DNA of 64,000 bases. Origin: Haliotis rufescens (lineage: Eukaryota). A program made the position numbers and the translations under genes. The stretch is taken from the NCBI RefSeq assembly GCF_023055435.1, contig NW_025964334.1, positions 48,112,001-48,176,000 of the forward strand. The letters are read 5' to 3'. Below the pieces are notes generated by a model. The model ran no database searches and was not told the origin of the DNA. It saw only the letters and a program-made list of their open reading frames with translations. This document shows positions 7,812-47,096 of the stretch, in pieces; position 1 is the first letter of the stretch; each line of letters opens with the position of its first letter.

Positions 7812-8990
7812 ATGGCCGCTTTCCTGTCAATATTTAGACGTGGTTTGGATCAGGACATGGTGGACAATGTGAACGGATTCTGGTCGGTTCTCCTCTTGGC
7901 CCTCTGCTCGGCTGGGGCATTTCTAGTGCGATACATTACTGATCCTACAAGCTGCTGGTACCCTTCACAATTTGAGGCATCACAGGTTTCATACTCCGAC
8001 CATGCCTGCTTCCTCACGGATGTCTTTTACCACCCTGCCACAAGTGATGTCCCAAAGTCAAGGCATGATCGTGTCCCCTCCTACCATCTCTGGATACCAC
8101 TCATACTCTTCTTCCAAGCCCTCGCTTTCAAAGTACCAAACATCATCTGGAACAGTGGCAAGCACTTCCTCACTTTCAATATGGACGAAACTGTCGAGTC
8201 CCTAAAAAGTGTACAACTGACCAATGCTGAGAATCGACAGGCCATTTTCAGTGATGCAGCCCGAGTATTTGGAAGTCTACTGAGGAGGAATCGATTCTTT
8301 CTGGCGTTGTTGTACCTATTTGTGAAGATTCTCTCATGTGTCAATCTCATAGCACAGTTTATGTTCCTCACGATATACTTCAGACAATACCTGGCAATCA
8401 GGGTAGGATCCTATGCTGGTTTGGATATGGGCTCCATCGTAAAACCATTACTTGTGAAACATGTTGTTTGCGACATCGATGTGTATATGATGACAAATTT
8501 TCAAAAATACACCGTTCAGTGCACTCTGCCAATCACCGAAATCTATGAGAAGATGTTCATATTCCTGTGGTACTGGGTCTTCCTCCTGGCTGTCATCACA
8601 ATCCTAAACCTTGTCCTGTGGGCAGGATTTCTCTTCATACCGTTCCTAAGAGATGGCAGGATAGCTGCCCACATCAACGATGCCAAAGGATCTCGCCCTG
8701 ACGAACCCAATGTAACTCGTTTCATCAGAAGTTTCCTCGGAATCGATGGTGTGCTTGTCCTGTCCATGATATCCCGGAATTCCAGCGAGTTAGTTGCAGC
8801 AGATCTCACCCAACATTTGTACCGGGTGTTTCAGGAGAAGGAAGAAGATCTTCAGAATCAGCAACATCTCTGCACAGGAGAACCGGAATGTGGCATTGTC
8901 CGAGATGAAGCAACAGGAGCCGTGGCAGCTTTACCAATGAGCGATCTACCCTCTGGTGCCGAAAAGTCGGAGAAGGCCCCGATTGTGTGA
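7812..8990 (+). CDS. Innexin paralogue 1 (392 aa)
   Basis: Four TM segments, EL1 Cys48/Cys66 (SCWYP...HACF), innexin signature variant SYHLWIPLILFFQALAFKVP, EL2 Cys220/Cys237 (CDID...TVQCTLP..EKMFIFLWYW), and post-TM4 FLGIDGVLVLSMI. A splice-acceptor-like tttcag lies 6 nt before the ATG. Confidence 0.95.
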   Translation: MAAFLSIFRRGLDQDMVDNVNGFWSVLLLALCSAGAFLVRYITDPTSCWYPSQFEASQVSYSDHACFLTDVFYHPATSDVPKSRHDRVPSYHLWIPLILFFQALAFKVPNIIWNSGKHFLTFNMDETVESLKSVQLTNAENRQAIFSDAARVFGSLLRRNRFFLALLYLFVKILSCVNLIAQFMFLTIYFRQYLAIRVGSYAGLDMGSIVKPLLVKHVVCDIDVYMMTNFQKYTVQCTLPITEIYEKMFIFLWYWVFLLAVITILNLVLWAGFLFIPFLRDGRIAAHINDAKGSRPDEPNVTRFIRSFLGIDGVLVLSMISRNSSELVAADLTQHLYRVFQEKEEDLQNQQHLCTGEPECGIVRDEATGAVAALPMSDLPSGAEKSEKAPIV

Positions 8991-9524
8991 CAACAGAACT
9001 GGTGTGCCATGCATTGAATGTATTTAATTATAATGTTGGGTCTTGAAATAACCTGGTGTTGAAAGGTTCGCCTGTCACGCCTAAGTCCTAGGTTGATTTC
9101 CTGCATGTGTATATTGTCTGAAGCCCATAGCGGTGTCAAACTATATTCAATCGAATAATTATTATTGTATTAAGAGTAATAAAACTCACTGATTCTTTGA
9201 ATGTCTGAAATGGACATCCAGTATGTTGCATTCCGTACTGACAGCGCCTCTATTAAAATATTTTACTTTGGCACTTAACATGAAAGTATTCCTGTGTTTT
9301 TTACACACATCTTTGACGTTTGGTGATGTCAGAGACTCACTGAGATGTTTCCCCGTATTGAATGACATCAATGTCAATGGCATCGTCATTTTTCAACCTG
9401 AGCAACTACCCAAGCCCTTTGGGCATAATGACACACGTTGTACTATCGGATAGTCATTAGTTGGGTCTTACCACATGCAGCAGGTGCCGGCGACCTGCAC
9501 TATTTGCTGTCCTATAATATGGTT

Positions 9525-9700
9525 TAGAGTGGTGGAGGAGCCTAGTGGTTACACCAAACACTCGGGTTTGATTCTTCATCATTTGTGGTGTTCCACAATG
9601 ATATTGCTGGAATACTGTGAAAAGTGGCGCAGAAACGTACTCACCCTCTCTCACACATACACACAAACACACACGCACGCACGCACGCACACGTACACAC
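9525..9700 (+). mobile_element. Old tRNA-derived SINE with (CA)/(GCAC)n tail in the 3' flank of the innexin copies
   Basis: 'gcctagtggtt...gggtttgattc...atattgctggaatactg..aaagtggcg' followed by a microsatellite. Paralogous positions at ~21710, 33305, 39505 and 47600 have different (GCAC)n lengths. Confidence 0.65.
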
Positions 9701-11349
9701 TATGACCACTCGTGTCATTTCGGGACGAGTCGATTGGTCTCAGAAATAGCTGTCTAAATATAATCGAGTCTGAACCAGTCAGATTATTATCCACGCCGTT
9801 GGGATACGATGAGACGCTATCAAGTCACGTGACCACACGTTCCCATGAACATGCATCCGGGTTAGACCTGGACTTCAGTTACCCTTAAGTGCAGGGGACT
9901 TTGCTTCTGAAATTAAAGAGTCGACTGACGGGATCGGCATTCCAGTAACAACTGAGCTCCAAATCAATCTGCTAGAAGGCCTCCTTCAGGAAAATACTAT
10001 GGAAAAGTCAAATTGTGCCGTCCCCCGCCGTATTGCTGCGTGAATATTTCTAAAAGAGGTGAAAGACAATACTCACGTATGTCAGTAAACTGCCAGGCAA
10101 ACGAAAGTACGTGCACACACTTGGAAATTGGATTTGGCAAAAAAGGTGTCTTGGCTGAAAACAGTCGCCAAAACACTGCAAACGTAAGGTCCACAACACT
10201 ACTGTGATACCCGTATCAAATACATCTCGATCACCTTTACTTGTTTGTTTCATTTTAGCCACCATCAAACAAGGGTGTATCCTTTCTTTTGCCCAGCAGT
10301 TTATGTCGGAGTGATAACGAGTTTATGTCACCCGTGATTAAGAATGTCAGTGCAATTTTAGCTTAATTATCGATGTTTGATTTTGATTTTCTTTATCTCA
10401 ATATTGTTATTTTTATGCACTTTATGATAGTTTGCAGTTTTGAATACGTTCTGGTCGGTTATACACAACAAGGATAGTGAGATGATGTTTTCTTGCTACT
10501 GGATTGAGATTTTACGATCGGAGCCAAAATCATCCGAATGCGGAGTTAATAAATAAGAACCTTATCTAATATGCGCGTAACACTTTCTCAACTTTCTCTG
10601 ATTTGAACCTCGTTGTGATACCGTTGTTCTCATGATAAGTAAATTAACAAAAGATTTTGAATTTCGGATGGCTTTGGGAGAAATGAAGTTGTTTTTTGCA
10701 GTGACTGACATCCAAAATACACAGATCATTCGTACCATATATGCCAAGATGTTTCGCCTCATTCTCTTAGGTGCTCCGACGTTCGCCTATCGGATAAATG
10801 TTGTTTTATACCGGATGCAGTTGACAATGATCTAGCTACAACACGACAATCTGTATGTAATAATTAAAGACGCTGGTTGAAAGTATGAACACCGATCATC
10901 TATGTCCTAGCGGTAGGCTGACACAAAATCCGCCAGGCCACATGATGTCAACCAGGTTCTCAAATCTTGGAGGGGATTCTTCGAACCTATCCTGAGCCCT
11001 GTTCCAGAAAGTGATCGTAGAGCTAAGGCGATCGTAGCTCACATACTTTTAATATAGACTTACGACTGTCATAACACAACGATTGCCTAGTGGAACGGGT
11101 CCCTGTCCTTGAACCATTACATTACCTCGCATAACCACGAGCACTCGGCACGGGATTGCTTAGAATGATGACAAACAATTCTTGACAAACAAGGTCTTGT
11201 GAGCTTAGTGACAAAATACTCGAAAAAAGGTTGATTTTATCTTCTCACATGATTCAGTGCACGTCCATATATCCACCCGAATCAGTGCCCACCACTGGTT
11301 TTGTGATTGGAGTGACATGGACTTTCTTTCTCTTCATTGAAGACCCCAT

Positions 11350-14300
11350 CAGATCAGTATAAGGTTTAAAAGTGGCAGAATTATGGATTTTGTGGACTTA
11401 CAGGACTTACGTACAATTGTTTTACCATACTTCAACCCCCGGTTATTCAGTTATGAATTCATTCTACCAAATTAAAAATCAATTACTTTATACTATATAT
11501 ATTATGATAAAAATTTATCTATTAATTCTATTTTTTTAGGAAACTGATGATTAAATGAGCACGTATTTGACTAAAAAGATCCTTGATGGATGAAACATTG
11601 AAACACTTATCCCTTGTAATGGAAAAATCAATACAGTCAAGCAGTACGTGCTTGACTGTGATTCTCTCGTCACAAGGGATACAAAACGGATGGTCCTCAC
11701 CTTACATTCGTGTGTATATCTTGAATGGCCAATATGACATCGTCGTAAAATGACCTCTTCAAATCTGGACTGACAACCCAAGTAGGTGTAACCATAGTTG
11801 GCTTAATTTGATGTGATTTATTGATACCTACTTGGGCGTCCCACTTCTTTGGCATAAGATCCCTGATGTAACATCTCATCACAGGTTTATTCTCACTGTT
11901 TAGAATTAGAATTAGTGTCACAGATTTGTTGAGTGCTGCTTCAGCTTCAGCATCAGCCATTGTGTTGACTTTTATAACCACATGACTGGGCAACCAACAA
12001 AAGACAATGTCGTATTGACCAGTTGAAAGATCAACATAAAGTTGTAAAATGTTTAAAATATTTGGATGATTAGAAGAGACTTTTTTCAGTACCTGAAGAC
12101 AAGATAGAGATTCAGAAAAGATGACAAATTGTTTATATGCAAACCTCTTTTGAATGTATATCAAAGGCTGTAAGGATAGCATTGGCCTCAGCAGGGAAAA
12201 TTGAGCTATTGTATGGTATTCTAGATGATAAATGTTTTGATCCAACGACAGTGGTGCATGCTTGGATCCATCAGTTAAGGTTGAACGGTGTGTGTCGTAT
12301 TTATTTCTTAATTGTAAATCTTCCTGTTGATATACTAGTTGGTTTGTGTCAGATATAATAAAACGGGTTAGAGAAACGTCTACTTCTGGCCTCACCAGCT
12401 GCCAGGGAGGAGTAGATAAAGCTGGTATGGAGATATAATACCTAGAACTATATTTGCAGCAATAATGTGTGATTTGATCCGAAATCCAAGTGGTGAAAAC
12501 AGTTTTGGTTTTCTCTGAAACAGTTCTTCATATAGGGGATGAAAAACGGAGTCATAGGCAGGATTAAAAGGATTGGAGTGTAATTTAGCGATATATTGAA
12601 GAGACAATTTAATACCACGTTGTTCAAAGAAGGTTCATCAGCCTCGACATAGATTCTGTCGACTGGAGAAGTTCTAAAAGAACCAAGGCATAGTCGTAGT
12701 CCTTGATGGTGGATTCAATCTAGCTGTAAGCTCCAGCATACACAATGGAGGCATTGTCCAATTTAGAGCAGATTAATGATCCCCTCCCCACTTTGAATTT
12801 GAGACGACTTTCAAAATATATAGGGCCTTCAGGCATTTAGTCTTTAAATATTTAATATGTGGCAAAAACGTCAAATGGTGGTCGAAAAACAATCCAAAAA
12901 ATGTGGCTTCTTTAATCCTTAAACCTTAATTGGAGTGTTATCTGGGTCTTTATGGGGGTTTATATTTCCGACAGAAATTTATGCAAATGGTCTTAGTCTG
13001 TGAAAACTTAAAGCCATTCTCTAGACACCATTTATGAATTTTATTAAGACACAACTGTAACTGTCTTTCAATGACACGCATATTTTTACCACAACATGAA
13101 ATATTAAAATCATCCACAAACAATGACCAATCGGTTGAGTCATTTAATACTTTAGATAAACTTTTTATTTTTATACTAAACAATTGACAGAAAATATACT
13201 GCCCTTTGGAACACCCTAATGCTGACTATAATGATAAGACAGGGTCGATACAACACGAACTTGAAATTGTCTGTCTGTTAAAAACTGTGATACAAATTGA
13301 GGCAAGCGGCCTCTTAAACAAAAGTCATGTAAATCTTTTAAAATACCATGCTTCCAAGAGGTATCATAAGCTTTTACAAGACCGAAAAAGATCGATACAG
13401 CATGTTGTTTATTGACAAAAGCATTTTTAGTAAATGATTCTAAACGAACTAAATGGTCAATTGTACCTCGTTTTTTACGAAAACCTCATTTGATATTACT
13501 GAGAAGATTGTATGGCATTTCTCCACGAAGAAGGAAAATGTCCTGTTGTCGAAATATCATCAAAAATATTCAGTGGTGTTACGAGACAAGATTCAGGCAA
13601 GTGTTTTAAGAGCTGATAATGGATATCATCAGCACCAGTTGCAGTATCATGAGCCTGTGCTAAAGCAGTGTGTAGCTCATGTAGTAAAAATACTTCGTTA
13701 TAATCTTCGCCATTGTCATGTAAATCTTTTTTTTTAAAAACATGCTTCCAAGAGGTATCATAAGCTCTTACAAGCCCAGTTTGTTTGCAATATCTGATTT
13801 TTCAGTCAATAAATTATCGTCATTTTTTAACCTTTCTCTTTGATTTTTTGGATCACGTTCCACACCTTTGACATAGGCGTCGGTGATTTTATTTTGGAAA
13901 CATAATCCTTCCAAGTCTGACGTTTATTGTATTTTTAAGTTCGACGAGCCTTGGCATAATTATTTTTTACATAAATCAAATTATGAACAGTAGGATGGTC
14001 GAAAGTATTTCTCTGCCTTCTCCCTGTGCTTCCTAGTTTCTTTGCACTCGTCAGTAAACCATGGTTTCCGAATATGTGGGTTCACAGAGGACTTAGGAAT
14101 AGTTTCATCAGAGAACAACTGAATTGGGTCAGGAACATCCATAAAAAGGTCTTGTTGCAATATGTCAATAAATATGGTCTGAAATAATGGCCAATTTGCC
14201 TTAGACAATTTCCATCTTCTTGTAGGTGGATCATCAAAGGGGTTTATAGCTGTAAGTACTGTTGGAAAATGATCACTTCCACAAGTCATCATGGACTGGC

Positions 14301-16075
14301 CATTCAAATTCATTATATAAGTTAGAATCTGTGATTGACAGATCTAATACAATATAGGTACCAGTTGTAGGATGTAAATATGTGTTCGAGGCGTCGTTGA
14401 GTATGCATAATTTATTATTAGAGATAAAATCTTCAAGGATTTTCCCTTTATTGTTAGTATTGAAACTTCCTCATAGAGGCTTGTGTCCATTAAGATCACC
14501 CATGATGATACAGGGCTTAGGTAGCTGGTCAAATACATTCTGAAGATCTGACTGCTGAAAATTTGAGGATGGGGAAATATATAGGGAACAAAGTGTGAAA
14601 GTTATTTGTAGAGTAAGACGGACAGCAACAGCCTGAAGATTGCAGTTGAGAGGAACATGACTGTGGATGATGCCCTTCCTCACCAAAATGGAAGCACCGC
14701 CAGTGGCTTTATCACCTGGGGTTGAAAAAGAATGATAAGAATTGTACTGACGCAATTCAAATTTATCAGTATGCTTAAGGTAGGTTTCTTGTATATGGTT
14801 TATAATCTTGTGCTAATAATTGAACTTCATCAAGGTTATTCCTGAGTTCTCTGCAATTCCACTGATTTTAGGAGATTGAGTCATGGTGGTTCGATGGGGG
14901 ATCTCTCACGTGCACGTCTGAAAGGTGGACTCCTACTATTGCTCCAGGACGATGGGGTTACGTCCATATCTAGAGTATCAAAGGAGTTGTGGAGAAGAAC
15001 CTCTGATGACGAGGATTTCATGGTAGTCTGTTTTCTGTTTAGTTTTTTTTTTTCTTTTCTTGTTAGAGTTATAACGGCAGATTCAATAATAACTGGTTCT
15101 ACAGCCTCTGGCTCTTTAGTAATAAGCTCTACAGAAGCTTCATCAATCAAAGGTTCGGATAGGCTTATTGTTTGAGTGGAGGGCGTATTTGAAGTTACTA
15201 CAGATAAAATGTTAACAGATTGCTGTGATGTAATCCATGTCAAATCTGTTTGGATAGAAATGGATGTTTTTTAGGATTTGTAGGAGCAGCAATAGCTACA
15301 ACAGCAGAAGAAGTTCTGGTTAGGGAGTTTGTGGAAACTGTTTTTCAATCAGCTTCTTACCCTCGTAAAACGATATATTCTTGAGCTTCAGGATTTTTTA
15401 CTGTTTTTGCCATTCAGGACATAACCTTGATAAAGCCAGATGTCCTTTGCAGTTTGCACATTTCATTTCTGCTGTGCAGTCGGTGTTGTCATGGCTGTCA
15501 CCACAGCACTGATAGCCTACACAGTGGTCGCAAGATTTAGATCCATGACCAAACTTTTGGCACTTAAAACATCGGAGTGGATTGGGGACATACACCTCCA
15601 CTCCAATGTTGAGATAACCAGCTTTAATAGACTTAGGAAGGACCGAAATAGCAAAGGTAAGCCAATAAGTGTTTGACGGGATGATGTCACCGTCTCTCGA
15701 TTTCATAGTAAAACGCTTAAATGCTGTCACCCTTTGAGTTGTCAGTTCATCAGTTATTTCTTGCTCTGACATGTCGGTCAGGCAACGAGCTCTGTCTCGA
15801 ACAATGCCTCGACAAGAATACAAGGTTTTGTATGCGGACACTGCAACCTCAATATTTACGAATATAATTAAAGACAAAAGATTCAGAGATTGCTGTCTCC
15901 GTGAACACTCAACGAGAAGAGAGCCACTGAGAAGATGTGTAACGTTTTTCACTTCTCTGCAAATTCCTGGAACAGCTTTGGAAATGGCGAATGGATTCAG
16001 CTTAAATGGTTGTTTGTCAGCTGCCTCGGTCACTATACACCAGGGTTACAGGGGTGATATACTCCAGCAAGTATG
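11350..16075 (-). mobile_element. Decayed near-full-length RNase H-containing LINE (I/Nimb-like), copy A
   Basis: ORF1 (15398-16033) has NPFAISKA and CCHC knuckles (PNPLRCFKCQKFGHGSKSC). ORF2 fragments include APE endonuclease (GGASILV, SLYISP, IIMGDLNGH, GSDHFP), RT (KAYDT, LFVDDF) and RNase H (TDGSK, FCWLPSHV). Many frameshifts. Confidence 0.9.
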
Positions 16076-17534
16076 AAGCAAATAGCAATATTTGTATACA
16101 AAATTAAATGCCAGGCTCGCTTGGCCCACGACAAGAAATTGGATACATACTGAATCACCAGAGTTGGCCCATGGGCCGCCGCCTTCTGGCATAAGAATCT
16201 AGACAATCACGTTCAGTGCAATGTGTCTGCACTTTGGAAATTGGGGAATATATACGTAAATATGCACACGTTATCAATTTGCTCAAAGTAAGCATACTAT
16301 AACAAAGAAAGGAGCCCAGCGAAATATTAATGCTACTGTTTTTACACAAAGGCTTAATGCAAAAGTTAAATATTCTAACACAAATTTCATTTTTTTAAAA
16401 CATTGAGTTTGGTGGAAATAAAAATATAATATTGCAAAGCAATATTTCCTAAAGTGATAATTAAATGAAAAGTACCAGTTGTCAGGTGGATGAAAAACAA
16501 AACAGTTTTCCAAATATTATCATGATTATAGCATATTACACACATATACTCGTTTTTATTATACTCGAAGATTGTCCACCGACCACAACACTATTAAGTT
16601 TTCTGTTTGCGAAATATATTAACAGACTCAGTGGAAATAAATCACGACAATCCTCACAGTTTTAATGTTATTCCACATTTTCAAACATTTAGGATCGATA
16701 GTAAACTAATGTATAAAATAAAACCCGCCTTATAAGACCGTAACAATCTTAACATAGTGAGTGATTGCATGTGATAGTAAGTGTGAATTTTGCATGTTCT
16801 TTAACAATTGCCGTCTGGCAATGCAAAGTATACTCTCTTCCTTTCTCATCTTATGACTATGGAAATAGTTTTGTCATTTCTATTATCACCAGAGTTGTAA
16901 GCGTCAATGACCTGCACCACGTTGGGCTTCCTCCAACATTAAACTGACAGATTAATGTAAATGAAATATTTTCCAAAGCGGCGTTAAGCAGGCATAGCCC
17001 TGTCTGGAACAGTGTAGGAATCAACAGCCGAATGTTGCACAAACAAAATATCGAATTTGTCTTGGAGTGCATATTTCCATGTTTAGCTCACCCGACCTGT
17101 GCCTCTAACTATTGTACATTTAGTTCTGTAGTTGGATGCTACGGTAAACTGTTTGCGTTGTTAACCCAGGATAGGAGTCACCAGGACAGGTAACTTCGCA
17201 TGCGTGACTACATATCCAAATTAAGAATTCGTTAATTTTGATCATACCTAAGTGAACATGTTTACATTGACTTGCATTTGCCTTTGTTTATGATAGGTTC
17301 CTCCGGTGGGGCAGGATACGCTCACCTTTTCCAGAACTCCAGGTGTCATCACTATTGATAGCGTTCAGGGACACTTGGTCTGAAAAGGGCAACGTATTAT
17401 ATATTCCCCAGTAACTAATCAAGACAGTACCCCACTTGTAATGAATAACGCCATAACATGGTCTGGTATAAAAACTAAATGACATAATTGGCTCAATTTG
17501 AAATAATGAGAGTTAATAGCAGAAACTTAGGGAA

Positions 17535-17726
17535 CATAAAGGCCGCGGTCGGTCAACAATACAACCAGCCCGCAAGTATTGTATATGTCAGCACTGTTCT
17601 GTACTATCAACAGCTAGTGCAACCAGAGGTGGAAGCAACGCTTGTCGAACAGTAATCCCAAGGATATTTCCAGGGTTTCCAGGATCCCTTTCAAGTTTCC
17701 AGTCTCTGGTTCCCTTTGTTGTAAGT
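17535..17726 (+). promoter_or_regulatory. Candidate promoter / non-coding first exon of innexin copy 2
   Basis: Block with no recognisable TE similarity, with TATA-like CATAAA (17535) and ending in a GTAAGT donor (17721). Strongly conserved upstream of copy 3 (donor 29269) and copy 5 (donor 44469). Every CDS is preceded by an acceptor (ttacag|ACAACAATG, or tttcag in copy 1). Confidence 0.4.
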
Positions 17727-17949
17727 ATTATATTTTATTTTGAGATTGTTTTAGATTATTTCAAATCAATTCGGTTTATGGAATTAAAGGTCATTGGTCC
17801 AAGTAGAAAGGTACATAGTTTTACAACAGACAGTGGGCACTAGAGGTACATGTATATGACATTTAAACCTTGAAATGGCGATGTTAAACAAGTGATTATG
17901 TTAATAATAATGCCATAACTTTTTCAGGTTAACTACAGCGGAGGTTCGA

Positions 17950-18175
17950 CATGAATTGAATGTACACTTAGCAATATATCTTTTGGGTATATAATTTGCT
18001 ATTATTTCATTATATTATGGACATTTTAATAGGACATTAAAGTTTATCTGCAATCAAATTAAAATTACAAAATGTGCAGATTCTGTCTTCATTTTGCCAA
18101 CGACCTATATCTATTTGTAACCCCGTCCCACAAATTCTCCATTGAACAAAATATCATATGTTGTACAAGGTTTTC
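17950..18175 (-). mobile_element. LINE ORF2 3'-end remnant
   Basis: LQIDIGRWQNEDRICTF.NFNLIADK..VLLKCP, a C-terminal Cys motif of non-LTR ORF2. Also at ~29540-29760 and 44720-44990. Confidence 0.6.
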
Positions 18176-18664
18176 ATATTTCGAGCTTATATTAATCGTT
18201 GACCCGTGAAGATGAGGGTTAGAATAGGTCTTAAGCAACCCTTGCTTGCCGTAAGAGCCGATTGACGGGATCCGGTGGTCAGGCTCGCTGACTTGGTAGT
18301 GCATGTCATCATATCCCAATTGCGTCTCAGATATGACACAACTAATTGGTGAACAATATTCACATACACTATACTTAGTGTAACGTTTTAAAATATATAT
18401 CAATGACTGAGTGAAGATGTTAATTAATAAACGATTTGCGTTATGAAGGGAATCACAGATAAGAAACAGTATTCCACTGTTGGCAAATTCACAGGCTGAA
18501 AAGTTTCTGAATTCTAAGTGGGGTGGCACTTGGGTGGGTTTTTTCGAATACATGTTCATGATTAAGACCGGACGCTAAACTTCCTTTCATTGGAAATGTT
18601 TCCAAAGTGGATGCCAGACCACTGTTAACAACTTTGACTTTGTCACGAAGCACAAATTATCTCA

Positions 18665-18905
18665 CTGAGCAGTGGGTCGACATCAACAAATCATCTCATG
18701 GGTTGGCATACAAATCTGTCCAAATATTAATTGAGATACTGCAGATTGAGCAGGATAATACTGCGATCACAATCCAGTTAGTTTGATGCCCCCCAAGAAG
18801 AAGTTTCGAAATCAGACCATGTCCATAAGAGGGAGACAACATCTCGCTGATCAGAAACCAGTTAACGATTATCATAATGCTGTTTCACATTTAGTTTTAC
18901 TGTGA
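18665..18905 (+). mobile_element. MULE-like transposase C-terminal remnant
   Basis: Frames read STNHLMGWH ... IEILQIEQ ... PPKKKFR ... AVSHL, resembling the RTNNxxEGWH...FIxxLxxEQ region of MULE transposases. Also at ~30255-30495 and 36690-36918. Confidence 0.45.
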
Positions 18906-18991
18906 ATACTGTAAATTGGAGATGTGATGGAAAAACGTATGTATTGTGTATTTTTGTATCGTTATGTGTCGGTCTCGTATAGTGTTTAAAA

Positions 18992-19345
18992 GGTGAGGTG
19001 AGGTGAAATGGGGTTTAACGTCGCGTCCAAGATTATTGCACGCATATAGCGACGTGCATGTACGTGTGTGTGTTTGTGTGGCTGCTTGAACTAGTCCGGA
19101 CTGATTCCGATTTATAGTGCTATCTTACTGAGATACCATGCCGCAGTATAACATGAATACCCCACTCAGACACAGTATACTGACTCCGAGCCAACCAGTC
19201 CTTGTTTTAGCCCCTTAATGCCGAGAGCCAGACAGGGTAACAACAAGTACCATTTTAACGTCTTTTGGTATGACGCGGTCGGGGTCGAACCCCGGACCTT
19301 CCGCTCTCCGGTCGGACGCTCTACCACTAGACCACGGAGGCGGAC
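18992..19345 (-). mobile_element. Full-length tRNA-derived SINE (Meta-domain type)
   Basis: Minus strand starts gtccgcctccgtggtctagtggtagagcg (A box) ...ggttcgacccc (B box), then ccaaaagacgttaaaatggtacttg...gactggttggctcggagtcag and a (cacct)n tail. Absent at the equivalent site before copy 4 (~36980). Confidence 0.85.
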
Positions 19346-19997
19346 TACAATGTTGAAGAAACAAGATGGTGTTAATCCCTTGTCCAGCTGCTGAACAAAT
19401 AACAAGTCACTGTTTATGGTTCCCAACGGGATGTTAATGATAAAATGCTAGTTACAGATTGTCAATTGTTATTTTAATTATTCACAACAGCAAAATCAAA
19501 GGTGACGTTTTACACATTCAATATTTCAAGATATACAATGTTGTTATTGTTGTAGGATTAACAGAAATAGCAGAAACAGTATATGTACATTGACTTAATA
19601 TTTATAGGACAATTGATATTCGCAAAAAAAATGCAATTACTTTTATCACTTACTTGCCCTTTGACATTACTTTAAATAGATTATATTTTGTAAGTGGTAT
19701 GGTATGTTGGGAGTGACACTTGGCGCTTTGCTGCCTGAACTAGTCTGAACTAATGTATTATAGTGCAAGCCCTCTAAGATACCATGCCACAGTTTAACAT
19801 ATGTACCTCACACGGACACAGTATCACCCCTTAATGCAGAGTGCCAGGCAGAGTAATAACAATGCGATCTCATAACACATTTTGGTGTCATCGAACCACC
19901 AGCCCTCAGCTCTCTGGACAGACGCTCTATCCGCTACACCTATCTACACAATAACATGTTAATATATGAACTATGTGTTGAATGTTTACAGACAACA

Positions 19998-21176
19998 ATG
20001 GCCGCTTTCCTGTCAATATTTAGACGTGGTTTGGATCAGGACATGGTGGACAATGTGAACGGATTCTGGTCGGTTCTCCTCTTGGCCCTCTGCTCGGCTG
20101 GGGCATTTCTAGTGCGATACATTACTGATCCTACAAGCTGCTGGTACCCTTCACAATTTGAGGCATCCCAGGTTTCATACTCCGACCATGCCTGCTTCCT
20201 CACGGACGTCTTTTCCCAACCTGACACAAGTGATGTCCCCAAACTAAGGCATGATCGTGTCCCTTCCTACCATCTCTGGATACCACTCATACTCTTCTTC
20301 CAAGCCCTCGCTTTCAAAGTACCAAACATCATCTGGAACAGTGGCAAGCACTTCCTCACTTTCAACATGGACGAAACTGTCGAGTCCATGAATTGTGTAC
20401 AACTGACCAATGCTGAGAATCGACAGGCTATTTTCAGTGATGCAGCCCGAGTATTTGGAAGTCTACTGCGAAGAAATCGATTCTTTCTGGCGCTGTTGTA
20501 CCTATTTGTGAAGATTCTCTCTTTTGTCAATCTCATAGCACAGGTTATGTTCCTCACGATATACTTCAGACAAAACCTGGCAATCAGGGTAGGATCCTAT
20601 GCTGGTTTGGATATGGGCTCCATCGTAAAACCATTACTTGTGAAACAGGTATTTTGCGACATCGGTGTGTATATTATGGCAAATCTTCGAACATACACCG
20701 TTCAGTGCACTCTGCCAATCACCGAAATCTATGAGAAGATGTTCATATTCCTGTGGTACTGGGTCTTCCTCCTGGCTGTCCTCACAATCCTAAACCTTGT
20801 CCTGTGCGCAGGATTTCTCTTCATACCGTTCCTAAGAGATGGCAGGATAGCTGCCCACATCAACGCTGCCAAAGGATCTCGCCCTGACGAACCCAAAGTA
20901 ACTCGTTTCATCAGAAGTTTCCTCGGAATCGATGGTGTGCTTGTCCTGTCCATGATATCCCGGAATTCCAGCGAGTTAGTTGCAGCAGATCTCACCCAAC
21001 ATTTGTACCAGGTGTTTCAGGAGAAGGAAGAAGATCTTCAGAATCAGCGACATCTCTGCACAGGAGAACCGGAATGTGGCATTGTCCGAGATGAAGCAAC
21101 AGGAGCCGTGGCAGCTTTACCAATGAGCGATCTTCCCTCTGGCGCCGAAAAGTCGGAGAAGGCCCCGATTGTGTGA
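19998..21176 (+). CDS. Innexin paralogue 2 (392 aa)
   Basis: Same motifs as copy 1. Start placed at the ATG after the ttacag acceptor (19991) rather than at the ORF-track start 19956. Confidence 0.95.
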   Translation: MAAFLSIFRRGLDQDMVDNVNGFWSVLLLALCSAGAFLVRYITDPTSCWYPSQFEASQVSYSDHACFLTDVFSQPDTSDVPKLRHDRVPSYHLWIPLILFFQALAFKVPNIIWNSGKHFLTFNMDETVESMNCVQLTNAENRQAIFSDAARVFGSLLRRNRFFLALLYLFVKILSFVNLIAQVMFLTIYFRQNLAIRVGSYAGLDMGSIVKPLLVKQVFCDIGVYIMANLRTYTVQCTLPITEIYEKMFIFLWYWVFLLAVLTILNLVLCAGFLFIPFLRDGRIAAHINAAKGSRPDEPKVTRFIRSFLGIDGVLVLSMISRNSSELVAADLTQHLYQVFQEKEEDLQNQRHLCTGEPECGIVRDEATGAVAALPMSDLPSGAEKSEKAPIV

Positions 21177-23539
21177 CAACAGAACTGGTGTGCCATGCAT
21201 TGAATGTATTTAATTATAATGTTGGGTTTTGAAATAACCTGGTGTTGAAAGGTTCGCTTGTCACGCCTAAGTCCTAGGTTGATTTCCTGCATGTGTATAT
21301 TGTCTGAGGCCCAAAGCGGTGTCAAACTATATTCAATCGCTTAATTATTATTGTATTAAGAGTAATAACACTCACTGATTCTTTGAATGTCCGAAATGGA
21401 CATCCAGTTTGTTGAATTCCGTAATGACAGCGCCTCTATTAAAATATTTTACATTGGCACTTAACATGAAAGTATTCCTGTGTTTTTTTCTCACAGCTCT
21501 GACGTTTGGTGATGTCAGAGACTCACTGAGATGTTTCCCCGTATTGATTGACATCAATGTCAATGGCATCGTCATTTTTCAACCTGAGCAACTACCCAAG
21601 CCGTTTGGGCATAATGACACACGTTGTACTATCGGATAGTCATTAGTTGGGTCTTACCACATGCAGCAGGTGCCGGCGACCTGCACTATTTGCTGTCCTA
21701 TAATATGGTTTAGAGCGGTGGAGGAGCCTTGTGGTTACACCAAACACTCGGGTTTGATTCTTCATCATTTGTGGTGTTCCACAATGATATTGCTGGAATA
21801 CTGTGAAAAGTGGCGCAGAAACGTACTCACCCTCTCTCACACATACACACAAACACACACGCACGCACGCACACGCACACTATGACCACTCGTGTCATTT
21901 CGGGACGAGTCGATTGGTCTCAGAAATAGCTGTCTAAATATAATCGAGTCTGAACCAGTCAGATTATTATCCACGCCGTTGGGATACGATGAGACGCTAT
22001 CAAGTCACGTGACCACACGTTCCCATGAACATGCATCCGGGTTAGACCTGGACTTCAGTTACCCTTAAGTGCAGGGGACTTTGCTTCTGAAATTAAAGAG
22101 TCGACTGACGGGATCGGCATCCCAGTAACAACTGAGTTCCAAATCAATCTGCTAGAAGACCTCCTTCAGGAAAATACTATGGAAAAGTCAAATTGTGCCG
22201 TCCCCCGCCGTATTGCTGCGTGAATATTTCTAAAAGAGGTGAAAGACAATACTCACGTATGTCAGTAAACTGCCAGGCAAACGAAAGTACGTGCACACAC
22301 TTGGAAATTGGATTTGGCAAAAAAGGTGTCTTGGCTGAAAACAGTCGCCAAAACACTGCAAACGTAAGGTCCACAACACAACTGTGATACCCGTATCAAA
22401 TACATCACGATCACCTTTACTTGTTTGTTTCATTTTAGCCACCATCAAACATGGGTGTATCCTTTCTTTCGCCCGGCAGTTTATGTCGGAGTGATAACGA
22501 GTTTATGTCACCCGTGATTAAGAATGTCAGTGCAATTTGAGCTTAATTATCGATGTTTGATTGTCATTTTTTTTATCTCAATATAGTTATTTATATGCAC
22601 TTTATGATAGTTTGCAGTTTTGAATACGTTCTGGTCGGTTATACACAACAAGGATAGTGAGATGATGTTTTCTTGCTACTGGATTGAGATTTTCCGATCG
22701 CAGCCAAAATCATCCGAATGCGGAGTTAATAAATAAGAACCTTATCTAATATGCGCGTAACACTTTCTCCACTTTCTCTGATTTGAACCTCGTTGTGATA
22801 CCGTTGTTCTCATGATAAGTAAATTAACAAAAGATTTTGAATTTCGGATGGCTTTGGGAGAAATGAAGTTGTTTTTTGCAGTGACCGACATCCAAAATAC
22901 AAAAGATCATTCGTACCATATATGCCAAGATGTTTCGCCTCATTCTCTTAGGTGCTCCGACGTTCGCCTATCGGATAAATGTTGTTTTATACCGGATGCA
23001 GTTGACAATGATCTAGCTACAACACGACAATCTGTATGTAATAATTAAAGACGCTGGTTGAAAGTAAGAACACCGATCATCTATGTCCTAGCGGTAGGCT
23101 GACACAAAATCCGCCAGGCCACATGTCAACCAGGTTCTTAAATCTTGGAGGGGATTCTTCGAACCTATTCCTGAGCCCTGTTCCAGAAAGTGATCGTAGA
23201 GCTAAGGCGATCGTAGCTCACATACTTTTAATATAGACTTACGACTGTCATAACACAACGATTGCCTAGTGGAACGGGTCCCTGTCCTTGAACCATTACA
23301 TTACCTCGCATAACCACGAGCACTCGGCACGGGATTGCTTAGAATGATGACAAACAATTCTTGACAAACAAGGCCTTGTGAGCTTAGTGACAAAATACTC
23401 GAAAAAAGGTTGATTTTATCTTCTCACATGATTCAGTGCACGTCCATATATCCACCCGAATCAGTGCCCACCACTGGTTTTGTGATTGGAGTGACATGGA
23501 CTTTCTTTCTCTTCATTGAAGACCCCATCAGATCAGTAT

Positions 23540-29489: not shown

Positions 29490-29575
29490 AGGTTCGACAT
29501 GAATTGAATGTACACTTAGCAATACATCTTTTAGGTTCGACATGAATTGAATGTACACTTAGCAATACATCTTTT
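29490..29575. repeat. 43-bp local tandem duplication specific to the unit before copy 3
   Basis: 'aggttcgacatgaattgaatgtacacttagcaatacatctttt' occurs twice here and once at ~17943. Confidence 0.85.
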
Positions 29576-31589: not shown

Positions 31590-32768
31590 ATGGCCGCTTT
31601 CCTGTCAATATTTAGACGTGGTTTGGATCAGGACATGGTGGACAATGTGAACGGATTCTGGTCGGTTCTCCTCTTGGCCCTCTGCTCGGCTGGGGCATTT
31701 CTAGTGCGATACATTACTGATCCTACAAGCTGCTGGTACCCTTCACAATTTGAGGCATCACAGGTTTCATACTCCGACCATGCCTGCTTCCTCACGGACG
31801 TCTTTTCCCAACCTGCCACAAGTGATGTCCCCAAACTAAGGCATGATCGTGTCCCTTCCTACCATCTCTGGATACCACTCATACTCTTCTTCCAAGCCCT
31901 CGCTTTCAAAGTACCAAACATCATCTGGAACAGTGGCAAGCACTTCCTCACTTTCAACATGGACGAAACTGTCGAGTCCATGAAATGTGTACAACTGACC
32001 AATGCTGAGAATCGACAGGCTATTTTCAGTGATGCAGCCCGAGTATTTGGAAGTCTACTGAGAAGAAATCGATTCTTTCTGGCGCTGTTGTACCTATTTG
32101 TGAAGATTCTCTCATGTGTCAATCTCATAGCACAGTTTATGTTCCTCACGATATACTTCAGACAAAACCTGGCAATCAGGGTAGGATCCTATGCTGGTTT
32201 GGATATGGGCTCCATCGTAAAACCATTACTTGTGAAACAGGTATTTTGCGACATCGGTGTGTATATTATGGCAAATCTTCGAACATACACCGTTCAGTGC
32301 ACTCTGCCAATCACCGAAATCTATGAGAAGATGTTCATATTCCTGTGGTACTGGGTCTTCCTCCTGGCTGTCCTCACAATCCTAAACCTTGTCCTGTGCG
32401 CAGGATTTCTCTTCATACCGTTCCTAAGAGATGGCAGGATAGCTGCCCACATCAACGCTGCCAAAGGATCTCGCCCTGACGAACCCAAAGTAACTCGTTT
32501 CATCAGAAGTTTCCTCGGAATCGATGGTGTGCTTGTCCTGTCCATGATATCCCGGAATTCCAGCGAGTTAGTTGCAGCAGATCTCACCCAACATTTGTAC
32601 CAGGTGTTTCAGGAGAAGGAAGAAGATCTTCAGAATCAGCGACATCTCTGCACAGGAGAACCGGAATGTGGCATTGTCCGAGATGAAGCAACAGGAACCG
32701 TGGCAGCTTTACCAATGAGCGATCTACCCTCTGGCGCCGAAAAGTCGGAGAAGGCCCCGATTGTGTGA
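31590..32768 (+). CDS. Innexin paralogue 3 (392 aa)
   Basis: Five aa differences from copy 2; EL2 identical to copy 2. Confidence 0.95.
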   Translation: MAAFLSIFRRGLDQDMVDNVNGFWSVLLLALCSAGAFLVRYITDPTSCWYPSQFEASQVSYSDHACFLTDVFSQPATSDVPKLRHDRVPSYHLWIPLILFFQALAFKVPNIIWNSGKHFLTFNMDETVESMKCVQLTNAENRQAIFSDAARVFGSLLRRNRFFLALLYLFVKILSCVNLIAQFMFLTIYFRQNLAIRVGSYAGLDMGSIVKPLLVKQVFCDIGVYIMANLRTYTVQCTLPITEIYEKMFIFLWYWVFLLAVLTILNLVLCAGFLFIPFLRDGRIAAHINAAKGSRPDEPKVTRFIRSFLGIDGVLVLSMISRNSSELVAADLTQHLYQVFQEKEEDLQNQRHLCTGEPECGIVRDEATGTVAALPMSDLPSGAEKSEKAPIV

Positions 32769-33451: not shown

Positions 33452-33503
<52 letters not shown>

Positions 33504-37635: not shown

Positions 37636-38814
37636 ATGGCCGCTTTCCTGTCAATATTTAGACGTGGTTTGGATCAGGACATGGTGGACAATGTGAACGG
37701 ATTCTGGTCGGTTCTCCTCTTGGCCCTCTGCTCGGCTGGGGCATTTCTAGTGCGATACATTACTGATCCTACAAGCTGCTGGTACCCTGCACATTTAACT
37801 GCATCCCACGTTTCATACTCCGACCATGCCTGCTTCCTCACGGACGTCTTTTACCAACCTTACACAAGTTATGTCCCCAAATCAAGTCATGAACGTGTCC
37901 CCTCCTACCATCTCTGGATACCACTCATACTCTTCTTCCAAGCCCTTGCTTTCAAAGTACCAAACATCATCTGGAACAGTGGCAAGAACTTCCTCACTTT
38001 CAACATGGACGAAACTGTCGAGTCCATGAAATGTGTACAACTGACCAATGCTGAGAATCGCCAGGCCATTTTCAGTGATGCAGCCCGAGTATTTGGAAGT
38101 CTACTGAGAAGAAATCGATTCTTTCTGGCGCTGTTGTACCTATTTGTGAAGATTCTCTCATGTGTCAATCTCATAGCACAGTTTATGTTCCTCACGATAT
38201 ACTTCAGACAATACCTGGCAATCAGGGTAGGATCCTATGCTGGTTTGGATATGGGCTCCATCGTAAAACCATTACTTGTGAAACATGTTTTCTGCGACAT
38301 CGATGTGTATATGTTGAAAAATCTTCGAAAATTCACTGTTCAGTGCATTCTGCCAATCACCGAAATCTATGAGAAGATGTTCATATTCCTGTGGTACTGG
38401 GTCTTCCTCCTGGCTGTCATCACAATCCTAAACCTTGTCCTGTGGGCAGGATTTCTCTTCATACCGTTCCTAAGAGATGGCAGGATAGCTGCCCACATCA
38501 ACGCTGCCAAAGGATCTCGCCCTGACGAACCCAATGTAACTCGTTTCATCAGAAGTTTCCTCGGAATCGATGGTGTACTTGTCTTGGCAATGATATCCCG
38601 GAATTCCAGCGAGTTAGTTGCAGCAGATCTCACCCAACATTTGTACCAGGTGTTTCAGGAGAAGGAAGAAGATCTTCAGAATCAGCGACATCTCTGCACA
38701 GGAGAACCGGAATGTGGGATTGTCCGAAATGAAGCAACAGGAACCGTGGCAGCTTTACCAATGAGCGAGCTACCCTCTGGTCCTGAAAACTCGGAGAAGG
38801 CCCCGATTGTGTGA
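37636..38814 (+). CDS. Innexin paralogue 4 (392 aa)
   Basis: Same architecture, with the most divergent EL1 (PAHLTASH...YQPYTSYVPKSSHE). ATG follows the ttacag acceptor at 37629. Confidence 0.95.
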   Translation: MAAFLSIFRRGLDQDMVDNVNGFWSVLLLALCSAGAFLVRYITDPTSCWYPAHLTASHVSYSDHACFLTDVFYQPYTSYVPKSSHERVPSYHLWIPLILFFQALAFKVPNIIWNSGKNFLTFNMDETVESMKCVQLTNAENRQAIFSDAARVFGSLLRRNRFFLALLYLFVKILSCVNLIAQFMFLTIYFRQYLAIRVGSYAGLDMGSIVKPLLVKHVFCDIDVYMLKNLRKFTVQCILPITEIYEKMFIFLWYWVFLLAVITILNLVLWAGFLFIPFLRDGRIAAHINAAKGSRPDEPNVTRFIRSFLGIDGVLVLAMISRNSSELVAADLTQHLYQVFQEKEEDLQNQRHLCTGEPECGIVRNEATGTVAALPMSELPSGPENSEKAPIV

Positions 38815-42795: not shown

Positions 42796-45700
42796 TTAAG
42801 CGTCATGAACAGTATCATGTGTCTATGAACAGTATCAATAGTGATGATACCTGGTGTTCGCGAAAAGGTGAGTGTATCCTGCCCCATCGGTGGAACCCAT
42901 CACAAACACACGCAAAAGCATGTCAATTGTTCACCTTGTGTTACGGAAGAAAATATCAAAACTTGTTCAAGCAGGCCCAAAATGTCCAAAGGTGGTTCCT
43001 AGAGTTTGGGCCGATTTGGCAAGTAAAAAACTCTTTTTTGTGACGTACTATTTAAAATGTTTGTGACACTGTGATCCACTGTATTTAACTTTTTCTTCCT
43101 ATTCCAAGGACCTTATGTACACTACTTTCTTCTTGGCTGATTCGTCACACAATTATTTCTTCATCGGTCAAGTGACCTACATTATTTATGTAAAACAATC
43201 ACAGAGTACCAGGTTCACTCTACAGAAGGTGACAACTGCTGGCGTTCCAAAGTATTCTTGTATGAAAGGTCAGTAATGGCAATTTGCAACAATTACCATG
43301 ATTACTCTGACATTAATTAGGTAAGTAGATGTACGGTTGGTGAAACACAAGCCCCCTGTGTAATATCACACATGTTCTGGCACCAATAATAGCACGACAG
43401 AGTGTTTACTGTTGTGATTATATTTAGTTCTGTAGTTGGATGCCACGGTAAACTGTTTGCGCTGTCAACCAAGGATAGGAGTCACCAGGACAGGTAACTT
43501 CGCATGCGTGACTACATATCCAAATTAAGAATTCGTTGATTAGGATCACACCTAAGTAAACATTTTCAGGTGAACAATTGACTTGCCTTTGCCTTTGTTT
43601 ATGAAAGGTCCCTCCGGTGGGGCAGGATACGCTCACCTTTTCGTGAACTCCAGGTATCATCACTATTGATAGTGTTCAGGGACACGTGCTTATGTTATGG
43701 TGGGAATCGCCAATGTATTCTGCTTTTGGCAGATATTTCCGATGATTATGGAAAGGGTTTGTTTGCTGTATTACCGATCACAGGAACATTAGTGTTTCAA
43801 ACAGTGATGTTGTTTCGCAATAACCTCATTTCACGGAAACAAGAGAACGCTTAAACTTCAAATGTGGCTTTTCAAATGAACAGGTATAGCAATAATTTTG
43901 TGTGACAGAGCTTTATTAATTGCTTGCACAGTAGTTGGCTCCTCAGATGAATTGTCCACAAGTGTTTTCTTATTTTCCGAAATCGACCTTCCTGCACATG
44001 GATATGTCAGAGGAAATGTGACCATCATCTCGGGCCCTTTATCAGCAGATTATAGACAAGGAATGCAACTCTACACAACGAATTGTTGTGACCTAATACA
44101 CTAGGCCATCTGTACCCCCTTGGTCTGTAAACAGCAACGTTTTATATATTCCCCAGTATCTAATCCAGTCAGTGCCCCACTTGTAACGAATAACGCCATA
44201 ACATGGTCTGGTATAGAAACTGAATGACATAATTGGCTCAATTTGAAATAATGAGAGTTAATAGCAGAAACTTAGGGAACATAAAGGCCGCGGTCGGTCA
44301 ACAATACAACCAGCCCGCAAGTATTGTATATGTCAGCATCACACTGTTCTGTACTATCAACAGCTAGTGCAACCAGAGGTGGAAGCAACGCTTGTCGAAC
44401 AGTAATCCCAAGGATATTTCAAACCTCCAGGATCCCTTTCAAGTTTCCAGTCTCTGGTTCGCTTTGTTGTAAGTATTTTATTTTATTTTGAGATTGTTTT
44501 AGATTAGATTATTTAAAATCAATTCGGTTTATGGAATTAAAGGTCATTGGTCCAAGTAGAAAGGTAAATAGTTTTACAACAGACAGTGGGACTAGAGGTA
44601 TATGACATTTAAACCTTGAAATGGCGATGTTAAACAAGTGATTATCTCAATAATAATGCCATAACTTCTTCCGGTTTAACTACAACAGAGGTTCGGCTTT
44701 CACACCTTAAAATACGACATGAATTGAATGTACACTTAGCAATACATCTTTTGGGTATATAATATGCTATTATTTCATTATATAATGGACATTTTAATAG
44801 GACATGAAAGTTTATCTGCAATCAAATTAAAATTACCAAATGTGCAGATTCTGTCTTCATTTTGCCAACGACCTATATCTATTTGTAACCCCGTCCCACA
44901 AATTCTCCATTGAGCAAAATACCATATGTTGTGCAAGGAACTTTTATTAAACAAGTAATATTCGGTTTTTAGACACATTTCATAACATGAATAGTTTTCA
45001 TATTTCGAGCTTATATTTATCGTTGACCCGTGAAGAGCAGGGTTAGAATTGGTCTTAAGCAACCCCTGCCTGCTGTAAGAGGCGATTGACGGGATCGGGT
45101 AATCAGGCTCGCTGACTTGGTAGTGCATGTCATCATATCCCAACTGCGTCTCAGATATGACACAACTAATTGGTGAACAATATTCACATACACTATACTG
45201 AGTGTAACGTTTTAAAATATATATCAATGACTGAGTGAAGATATTAATTAATAAACGATTTGCGTTATGAAGGGAATCACAGATAAGAAACAGTGCTCCA
45301 CTGTGGCAAATTCGCAGGCTGAAAACTTCTGAATTCTTAGTTGGGTGGCACTTGGGTTTTTTTTTCGAATACATGTTCATGGTTAAGACCGGACGCTAAA
45401 CTTCCTTTCATTGGAAATGTTTCCAAAGTGGATGCCAGACCACTGTTAACAACTTTGACTTTGTCACGAAGCACAAATTATCTCATAGCAGAACCAGTAT
45501 ATGTATATTGACTTAATATTCATAGGACAATTGATATTCGCAAAAAATTGCAATTATTTTTATCACTTACTTGCCCTTTGATATTACTTTAAATAGTTCA
45601 TATTTTGTAACTATGATATGGTATGTTGGGAGTAACATTTGGCGCTTTGCTGCCTGAAATAGTCTGAACTAATGTATTATAGTGCAAGCCCTCTAAGATA

Positions 45701-45917
45701 CCATGCCACAGTTTAACATATGTACCTCACTCGGACACAGTATCACCCCTAAATGCCAAGCGCCAGCCAGAGTAATAACAAATGCGATCTCATAACGCAT
45801 TTTGGTGTGATCGAACCACCAGCCCTCAGCTCTCTGGACAGACGCTCTATCCGCTACACCTATCTACACAATAACATGTTAATATATGAACTATGTGTTG
45901 AATGTTTACAGACAACA

Positions 45918-47096
45918 ATGGCCGCTTTCCTGTCAATATTTAGACGTGGTTTGGATCAGGACATGGTGGACAATGTGAACGGATTCTGGTCGGTTCTCCT
46001 CTTGGCCCTCTGCTCGGTAGGGGCATTTCTAGTGCGATACATTACTGATCCTACAAGCTGCTGGTACCCTTCACAATTTGAGGCATCACAGGTTTCATAC
46101 TCCGACCATGCCTGCTTCCTCACGGATGTCTTTTCCCAACCTGACACAAGTGATGTCCCAAAGTCAAGGCATGATCGTGTCCCCTCCTACCATCTCTGGA
46201 TACCCCTCATACTCTTCTTCCAAGCCCTTGCTTTCAAAGTACCAAACATCATCTGGAACAGTGGCAAGCACTTCCTCACTTTCAACATGGACGAAACTGT
46301 CGAGTCCCTGAAAAAAATACAACTGACCAATGCTGAGAATCGCCAGGCTATTTTCAGTGATGCAGCCCGAGTATTTGGAAGTCTACTGAGAAGAAATCGA
46401 TTCTTTCTGGCGCTGTTGTACCTATTTGTGAAGATTCTCTCATGTGTCAATCTCATAGCACAGTTTATGTTCCTCACGATATACTTCAGACAATACCTGG
46501 CAATCAGGGTAGGATCCTATGCTGGTTTGGATATGGGCTCCATCGTAAAACCATTACTTGTGAAACAGGTTTTTTGCGACATCGGTGTGAGAATTTTGGA
46601 AACTCTTCGAACATACACTTTTCAGTGCACTCTGCCAATCACCGAAATCTATGAGAAGATGTTCATATTCCTGTGGTACTGGGTCTTCCTCCTGGCTGTC
46701 ATCACAATCCTAAACCTTGTCCTGTGGGCAGGATTTCTCTTCATACCGTTCCTAAGAGATGGCAGGATAGCTGCCCACATCAACGCTGCCAAAGGATCTC
46801 GCCCTGACGAACCCAATGTAACTCGTTTCATCAGAAGTTTCCTCGGAATCGATGGTGTACTTGTCTTGTCCATGATATCCCAGAATTCCAGCGAGTTAGT
46901 TGCAGCAAATCTCACCCAACATTTGTACCTGGTGTTTCAGGAGAAGGAAGAGGAACTTCAGAATCAGCGACATCTCTGCACAGGAGAACCGGAATGTGGC
47001 ATTGTCCAAAATGAAGCAACAGGAACCATGGCAGCTTTACCAATGAGCGATCTACCCTCTGGTCCTGAAAAGTCGGAGAAGGACCAGATTGTGTGA
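45918..47096 (+). CDS. Innexin paralogue 5 (392 aa)
   Basis: Same architecture, with the most divergent EL2 hairpin (CDIGVRILETLRTYTFQC) and C-tail (…EKDQIV). Confidence 0.95.
   Translation: MAAFLSIFRRGLDQDMVDNVNGFWSVLLLALCSVGAFLVRYITDPTSCWYPSQFEASQVSYSDHACFLTDVFSQPDTSDVPKSRHDRVPSYHLWIPLILFFQALAFKVPNIIWNSGKHFLTFNMDETVESLKKIQLTNAENRQAIFSDAARVFGSLLRRNRFFLALLYLFVKILSCVNLIAQFMFLTIYFRQYLAIRVGSYAGLDMGSIVKPLLVKQVFCDIGVRILETLRTYTFQCTLPITEIYEKMFIFLWYWVFLLAVITILNLVLWAGFLFIPFLRDGRIAAHINAAKGSRPDEPNVTRFIRSFLGIDGVLVLSMISQNSSELVAANLTQHLYLVFQEKEEELQNQRHLCTGEPECGIVQNEATGTMAALPMSDLPSGPEKSEKDQIV

Follow-up and report, generated by a model that had tools for sequence, protein, structure and literature searches.

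The 64,000-nucleotide window analysed here (Haliotis rufescens, contig NW_025964334.1, positions 48,112,001 to 48,176,000) carries a lineage-specific tandem set of expressed abalone innexin genes, five copies (c1 to c5) in which amino acid replacements are concentrated in one short extracellular hairpin. Open reading frames (ORFs) and their translations give five intact coding sequences (CDS) of 392 codons, all on the plus strand of a window with no N, in agreement with an earlier note on this DNA that counted five intact 392-residue paralogues. The coding exons are mosaics of different ages, and the hairpin types are, at the protein level, shared with Haliotis cracherodii.

On balance, we lean towards an account in which gene conversion or unequal exchange would keep most of the coding exon of this expressed array near-identical from copy to copy. 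Segments of the docking surface would escape this homogenisation, chiefly the hairpin of the second extracellular loop (E2), whose 16 residues lie between Cys220 and Cys237, and to a lesser degree the first extracellular loop (E1). The divergence of these segments, for the most part replacements, would be older and date from before the split between H. rufescens and H. cracherodii. Each copy would offer a different hairpin tip to the opposing hemichannel (residues 223, 225, 228, 231 and 232 change charge among the copies), different tips would alter which hemichannels dock, and either selection or mismatch-limited conversion would keep the hairpin types apart.

Position and extent of the variable hairpin

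Altogether 54 residues vary among the five copies, 17 of them in codons 217-238, and a further 22 codons vary only synonymously. Other variable clusters lie at residues 52-58 (c4 only), 73-86 and 131-134. Copies c1 and c5 differ at 31 residues, including 12 in the hairpin segment with one silent change there, while c1 and c2 differ in the hairpin by eight replacements and one silent change; our recount agrees with the manual figures of the earlier note, whose four hairpin strings for residues 217-237 were all exact. Hairpin replacements number 17 per ~51 non-synonymous sites, compared to 24 synonymous changes per ~256 sites outside (odds ratio 4.8, Fisher p=3.5e-5), a clustering far beyond chance. 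At codon 225, each of the three positions is changed (TAT vs AGA).

The Pfam Innexin family (PF00876) was recognized with E=1.2e-56 and 192.8 bits (cut-off 25), residues 15-338 aligning to positions 2-331 of the 333-position profile, and phmmer matched Caenorhabditis elegans INX-6 with E=2.5e-26. Cysteines C48, C66, C220 and C237, described earlier as constant in the array, are invariant in 27 sequences and align to C58, C76, C248 and C265 of INX-6, with 16 residues between the E2 cysteines in both proteins. The second transmembrane helix (TM2) starts with SYHLWIPLI, compared to QYYQWVPYV in INX-6, so that W94 and P96 are kept, in contrast to the YYQ part. Structure prediction for c1 with AlphaFold2, of modest confidence (overall predicted local distance difference test score 58; 73-82 in the membrane and loop core), places four transmembrane helices at residues 14-42, 94-120, 139-189 and 241-291 and, in E2, strands at 217-226 and 229-238 with a turn at 227-228. 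Its top Foldseek matches are the INX-6 structures 5h1q and 5h1r (E ~1e-12, ~22-23% identity). In the INX-6 structure, the four loop cysteines make two E1-E2 disulfides, and E2 is an anti-parallel beta-hairpin that fits a cavity of the opposed hemichannel built from E1 lobes and two E2 hairpins (PMC5146279).

The five copies thus read as full-length innexins that are predicted to form intercellular channels, and the cysteine alignment predicts the same E1-E2 disulfides in abalone. By homology, the variable segment corresponds to the docking-surface beta-hairpin of E2, with residues 223-232 at its tip, and residues 73-86 would form the second E1 lobe. The earlier placement of the variable loop at the docking interface is thereby borne out for E2 by the INX-6 alignment, the published structure and the modelled strands. 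The coordinates of the copies and their variable segments are collected in Table 1.

Table 1. Coordinates of the innexin copies and their variable segments (positions within the window)
Feature	Position	Strand	Remarks
c1 coding exon	7806..9203	+	CDS 7812-8990, 392 aa; acceptor to approximate 3' end; based on ORF, Pfam, contig starts at 7806, contig ends at ~9203-9285 and AATAAA at 9178-9183
c2 CDS	19998..21176	+	392 aa
c3 CDS	31590..32768	+	392 aa; 9 nt from c2, hairpin identical to c2
c4 CDS	37636..38814	+	392 aa
c5 CDS	45918..47096	+	392 aa
c1 hairpin segment, codons 217-238	8460..8525	+	E2 beta-hairpin (by homology), hypervariable island
c2 hairpin segment, codons 217-238	20646..20711	+	
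c3 hairpin segment, codons 217-238	32238..32303	+	
c4 hairpin segment	38284..38349	+	mix of c1-type and c5-type states
c5 hairpin segment	46566..46631	+	nearest H. cracherodii P0025, 3/22 residues different
c4 codons 49-90 (E1 loop)	37780..37905	+	second variable segment; private patch at codons 52-58
CAG splice acceptor of c1	7803..7805	+	after T-rich tract, 6 nt before c1 ATG

Transcription and mosaic history of the coding exons

Transcription was assessed by comparing contigs of four public runs with positions 7000-10800 (3,801 letters). Three of these runs, all small, are RNA-like (X2 and X7 from organism A, X10 from organism B) and one is a DNA run (organism C). The RNA-like runs cover only the interval from 7806 to ~9285 plus three high-copy repeats, whereas the DNA run covers every bin. 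In each of X2, X7 and X10, a contig match begins exactly at 7806 and is preceded by 79-130 unlike letters; the genomic context reads tgttgtatgttttcag up to this junction and acaaca ATG after it. Since contigs start at the canonical CAG acceptor behind unlike upstream letters, each gene is composed of two parts joined by splicing, a leader exon that is non-coding and one coding exon. Copies 2-5 keep the CAG ACA ACA ATG context (translated as ...LQTTM before the start), and the AATAAA of c1 lies shortly before a contig end at 9203. In copies 2-5 the reading frame stays open before the ATG, but these extensions were rejected as coding because they precede the acceptor and are therefore intronic.

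Contigs with 0-1 differences from c1 were found beside hairpin-spanning contigs with 9 and 11 differences, which indicates that more than one copy is expressed. The contigs of three runs break at 8461, in the c1 hairpin. Sibling runs of the same studies gave no matching words, as expected for tissue-dependent RNA. Two letters of c1, at 8680 (D290) and 8863 (Q351), occur in none of the four runs, whose contigs carry the letter of the other copies; possible explanations are alleles private to the reference animal and conversion of c1 in other animals. The high-copy repeats near c1 are short (7381-7507, 9540-9666 and 10048-10301), reach depths of tens to hundreds times those of neighbouring bins in the DNA run and are present in the RNA-like runs too.

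The gene units of the array are segmental duplications. Those of c2 and c3 are 98.7-99.4% identical over ~10-12 kb (11645-21878 vs 23670-33468), a divergence so low that they may represent either a very young duplication or one haplotype assembled twice, in which case the number of distinct copies is perhaps four.

Within the coding exon, three partitions of the informative sites are incompatible with each other; they join c4 with c5 (10 sites), c1 with c4 (7 sites) and c1 with c5 (5 sites). Five of the seven c1+c4 sites are in the hairpin and the c1+c5 sites lie within codons 70-133, yet the three partitions interleave within the hairpin. For the five copies, the pairwise homoplasy index gave p=0.0006, and the four-gamete test failed for 40% of the pairs of informative sites. 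Synonymous changes are also patchy along the gene (p=0.0035): codons 57-175 hold 15, the hairpin with its 22 codons holds three (Fisher p=0.0033), and codons 176-216 and 239-313 hold none. Flank divergence between copies spans 0.02-0.14 and does not follow the synonymous divergence (dS) of the CDS: the flanks of c5 are 10-14% different from those of other copies at a CDS dS of 4-8%, whereas the c1 and c2 flanks differ by 2.5% at a dS of 6%.

A similar patchwork was observed against a related innexin subfamily (~72% identity) found in arrays 90-320 kb upstream and on a second contig, C600. The proportion of synonymous differences (pS) between this subfamily and the window copies is 0.84 in codons 1-47 and 0.13-0.31 in codons 91-345, and a 121-nt hairpin query aligns in BLAST to the upstream subfamily through its two flanks only, at 92-95%. 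The copies are therefore recombinant mosaics, each exon a patchwork of ages as from gene conversion or unequal exchange, and the loop segments are among its old patches. Given this mosaic structure and the excess of synonymous divergence in the loops, the loops appear to be older parts of the exon and not parts that demonstrably evolve faster.

Two sources of the variable segments were considered and rejected. Templated replacement of the hairpin from donor cassettes was dismissed, as the 121-nt c1 and c5 queries matched only known family genes in the assembly and no stand-alone donor hairpin cassette. For the E1 patch of c4, direct conversion from the neighbouring subfamily's copies was rejected because the shared residues A52 and T55 differ in their codons; A52 is also shared with H. 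cracherodii and outgroups.

Age, selection and constraint of the hairpin types

Comparisons between species were made at the protein level. Two H. cracherodii proteins, P0025 and P0026, share a 90% cluster with the window copies. Hairpins of c5 and P0025 differ at 3/22 residues and those of c1 and P0026 at 4/22, whereas c1 and c5 differ at 12/22. This closeness across species, set against the distance within one, means that the hairpin types predate the H. rufescens/H. cracherodii split and are trans-specific at the protein level. Outside the loops, the seven proteins are about equally distant from each other (4-22 differences) in a star-like pattern. Residue 73 of the E1 lobe changes in step with the hairpin type, Y or F accompanying D223/M226 (c1, c4 and P0026) and S or V accompanying G223/I226 (c2, c3, c5 and P0025), despite intervening sites of other partitions. 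This is a hint of E1-E2 co-adaptation drawn from very few independent events.

The hairpin is the divergent part of the protein in other abalones as well. In Haliotis rubra, P0005 and P0012 differ at 9/16 hairpin residues and 21/288 elsewhere, and in Haliotis asinina, P0016 and P0017 differ at 11/16 and 33/287, so that 9-11 of 16 hairpin differences in these paralogue pairs contrast with 7-11% elsewhere. Among 23 family members, entropy is highest in the hairpin (1.85 bits), followed by the second E1 lobe (1.73), and falls to 0.57 in the cytoplasmic loop and 0.19-0.26 bits in TM2 and TM4. Nevertheless, the hairpin is 16 residues long in 22 of the 23 members and keeps both cysteines, V224, T234, V235 and an alternating hydrophobic pattern. 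The fixed length, cysteines and strand positions argue that the hairpin is not free of constraint.

Pairwise ratios of non-synonymous to synonymous divergence (omega, dN/dS) were calculated by the Nei-Gojobori method (NG86), and site and partition models were run with our own codon-likelihood code. For the whole gene, dS ranges from 0.015 to 0.076 and omega from 0.38 to 1.07. For the hairpin (codons 217-238), dS is 0.08-0.26 (1-3 changes), dN 0.14-0.36 and omega 0.74-4.5. Model M2a was preferred over M1a on 15/15 unrooted topologies, with a likelihood-ratio test (LRT) statistic of 18.9-33.7 (p<=8e-5), an omega2 of ~7 and 5-12% of sites in the positive class; sites 55, 76, 133, 225 and 228 have high posteriors, those of 225 and 228 being at least 0.96. 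Both models assume a single synonymous rate and a single history across sites. Allowing two classes of site rate gives a better fit than M2a does, and adding a class with omega>1 to that model brings an LRT of only 1.62 (p=0.44).

Partitions with their own branch lengths gave a similar picture. For the five copies, omega is 1.5-2.6 in the hairpin (p=0.10-0.48 vs omega=1; tree length 1.2-1.3 substitutions per codon), 0.37-0.54 in E1 (p=0.03-0.23; tree length 0.67-0.78) and 0.47-0.59 in the rest of the exon (p=0.006-0.08; tree length 0.17-0.19). With nine paralogues, these values become 1.02 in the hairpin (p=0.74; tree length 4.25) and 0.36 in the rest (p=6e-16; tree length 1.05). The hairpin tree is thus 7x as long as that of the rest for five copies and 4x for nine paralogues, and the E1 tree 4x for five copies. 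On the best hairpin tree, the 95% profile interval of the hairpin omega is ~0.5-5.6. Replacement and silent changes stand at 17:3 in the hairpin and 47:24 elsewhere (p=0.16, not significant). The hairpin hence stands out by its total amount of change and far less by its replacement/silent ratio, and positive selection on it is possible.

The earlier note had proposed that diversifying selection is generating new docking loops. M2a is significant on every tree, but this signal does not survive once the hairpin receives its own branch lengths or site-rate classes are allowed, and with nine paralogues the hairpin omega is close to unity. An omega above 1 is thus not established. An explanation by recurrent diversifying selection that keeps making new hairpins in recently duplicated genes, whether for a wiring or recognition code or to evade a loop-binding pathogen or toxin, draws further on the hairpin dN, which exceeds the gene-wide dS and reaches beyond the flank divergence, on the three-position change at codon 225 and on the many changes that alter charge. 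It is countered not only by the loss of the signal under heterogeneous rates and histories and by the non-significant partition omega, but also by the raised density of synonymous changes in the hairpin over its flanks and by the low omega of E1. Moreover, since H. cracherodii has the hairpin types too, the differences are for the most part old and not of recent making. We consider this explanation unlikely.

Relaxed constraint alone, in which a tolerant tip drifts in redundant young duplicates and the resulting mismatch blocks conversion with no functional meaning, seems to us unlikely. The hairpin omega interval includes 1, the replacement/silent ratio does not separate the hairpin from the remaining gene, the omega of the latter is itself fairly high and the neighbouring arrays contain pseudogenes, all of which would suit such drift. 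On the other hand, drift does not readily account for the conserved hairpin length, for the retained cysteines, V224, T234, V235 and hydrophobic alternation, for hairpin types kept across a species split with 3-4 changes, for a replacement density 4.8x the synonymous density outside, or for the recurrence of the same hot spot in four species.

Several results also weigh against our preferred account of homogenised exons with escaping docking segments. Distances outside the loops are alike within and between species (4-22 vs 9-20 differences), and with no clustering by species, strong homogenisation after the split is not supported; an old burst of duplication followed by slow evolution would fit the protein data too. 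The hairpin omega is not significantly above 1 and only marginally higher than that of the rest of the gene (p ~0.09 on the best hairpin tree), so that selection maintaining the types is not demonstrated. The local hairpin dS depends on three synonymous changes, and NG86 synonymous estimates for the hairpin between subfamilies are unreliable: a pS of 0.885 was discarded because nearly every codon has changed its residue, and of the six hairpin codons with a conserved residue, only two differ synonymously. The RNA status of X2, X7 and X10 is deduced from the shape of their coverage. Lastly, docking specificity is carried over from the INX-6 structure, which suggests that docking may be copy-specific.

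A stronger proposal extends the preferred account: the abalone arrays with variable hairpins would constitute a combinatorial code of gap-junction compatibility, in which selection would keep the types apart across species, conversion in short tracts would shuffle them among copies, different cells would express different types, and only matching hemichannels would dock. Taken jointly, these elements appear quite improbable. If true, such a code would be a recognition system built on the docking surfaces of channels.

The neighbouring arrays belong to the same single-coding-exon family and comprise L006-L014 (C556, the contig of the window, at 47.80-48.03 Mb) and L007, L009 and L012 (C600), with a copy order on C600 that differs from C556. 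Stop codons were found in L008, L010, L012 and L014. L009 has the same E1 deletion as L008 together with the first half of the hairpin of L011, and looks like a further recombinant. Three members of the upstream subfamily, L006, L009 and L011, carry an N-x-S sequon (NKS, NNS or NES) in the E1 lobe near residue 74 that is absent from the window copies, possibly reflecting a glycosylation difference between the subfamilies.

In pannexins, glycosylation of the loops accompanies loss of docking. No N-glycosylation sequon (N-x-S/T) was found in E1 or E2 of the five window copies, which is compatible with docking. The conserved sequon of the neighbouring subfamily could instead speak for pannexin-like, non-junctional hemichannels, whose hairpin would face the medium and whose variation would concern ligands, gating or microbes, and innexins are described as forming non-junctional channels too (PMC9949713). 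For the window copies we regard such a role as highly improbable, as they lack the sequon and retain in full a hairpin and cysteine geometry like those of INX-6.

Between the innexin genes, the window contains long ORFs on the minus strand at 821-1744, 11697-12395, 15398-16033, 23722-24633 and 44778-45380; the second, third and fourth of these fall inside the duplicated unit of c1, c2 and c3. These have no Pfam match, and a Pfam scan of ten other long ORFs of the window likewise gave no family. Tandem repeats occur at 59753-60638, with a period of ~44 bp over ~890 bp in a self-BLAST ladder, and at 52821-53231, where AATAAA recurs every ~58 bp.

Comparison with known systems

The closest structural reference is INX-6 (PDB 5H1Q/5H1R; PMC5146279), which shares with the abalone proteins the Pfam family, the fold, two cysteines per loop and a 16-residue E2 hairpin. 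The abalone proteins differ in being recent tandem paralogues with one coding exon and ~22-23% identity to INX-6 in the structural alignment. Their cytoplasmic loop and C-terminal domain are near-invariant and their hairpin is the most variable part, and their channel is a prediction.

Connexins build the docking surface from E1 and E2, and a few E2 residues are thought to decide which hemichannels pair. Docking compatibility determined by E2 is what we propose for the abalone array. However, connexins are an unrelated sequence family, and the abalone pattern of conservation is reversed with respect to theirs, in which the extracellular loops are conserved and the cytoplasmic parts variable.

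The leech Hirudo reportedly has ~21 innexins, and an ectopic innexin is said to couple neurons to cells expressing the same innexin. The likeness to abalone lies in a large set of innexin paralogues whose identity sets the coupling partners. The leech genes are reportedly old, dispersed, multi-exon paralogues, and we know of no report of hairpin-focused divergence among near-identical tandem copies in that animal. Our full-text literature search found no description of the abalone array and no loop-focused divergence of innexin paralogues, although its coverage was limited and earlier work is possible. To our knowledge, the determinants of docking choice in innexin hemichannels are largely unknown. 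The copies of the array vary naturally on a near-isogenic background, mostly in the E2 hairpin of 16 residues and at a few positions in E1, and so form a ready-made set for studying docking specificity by pairing of copies and swapping of hairpins.

Concerted gene families with islands that escape conversion provide the remaining parallel. At the protein level, the abalone genes differ from them in that homogenisation within species does not exceed similarity between species. Both show mosaic partitions, synonymous divergence in patches and sharply conserved flanks around a short divergent island, and under the preferred account the array would illustrate cleanly how a short functional island resists homogenisation within a gene family.

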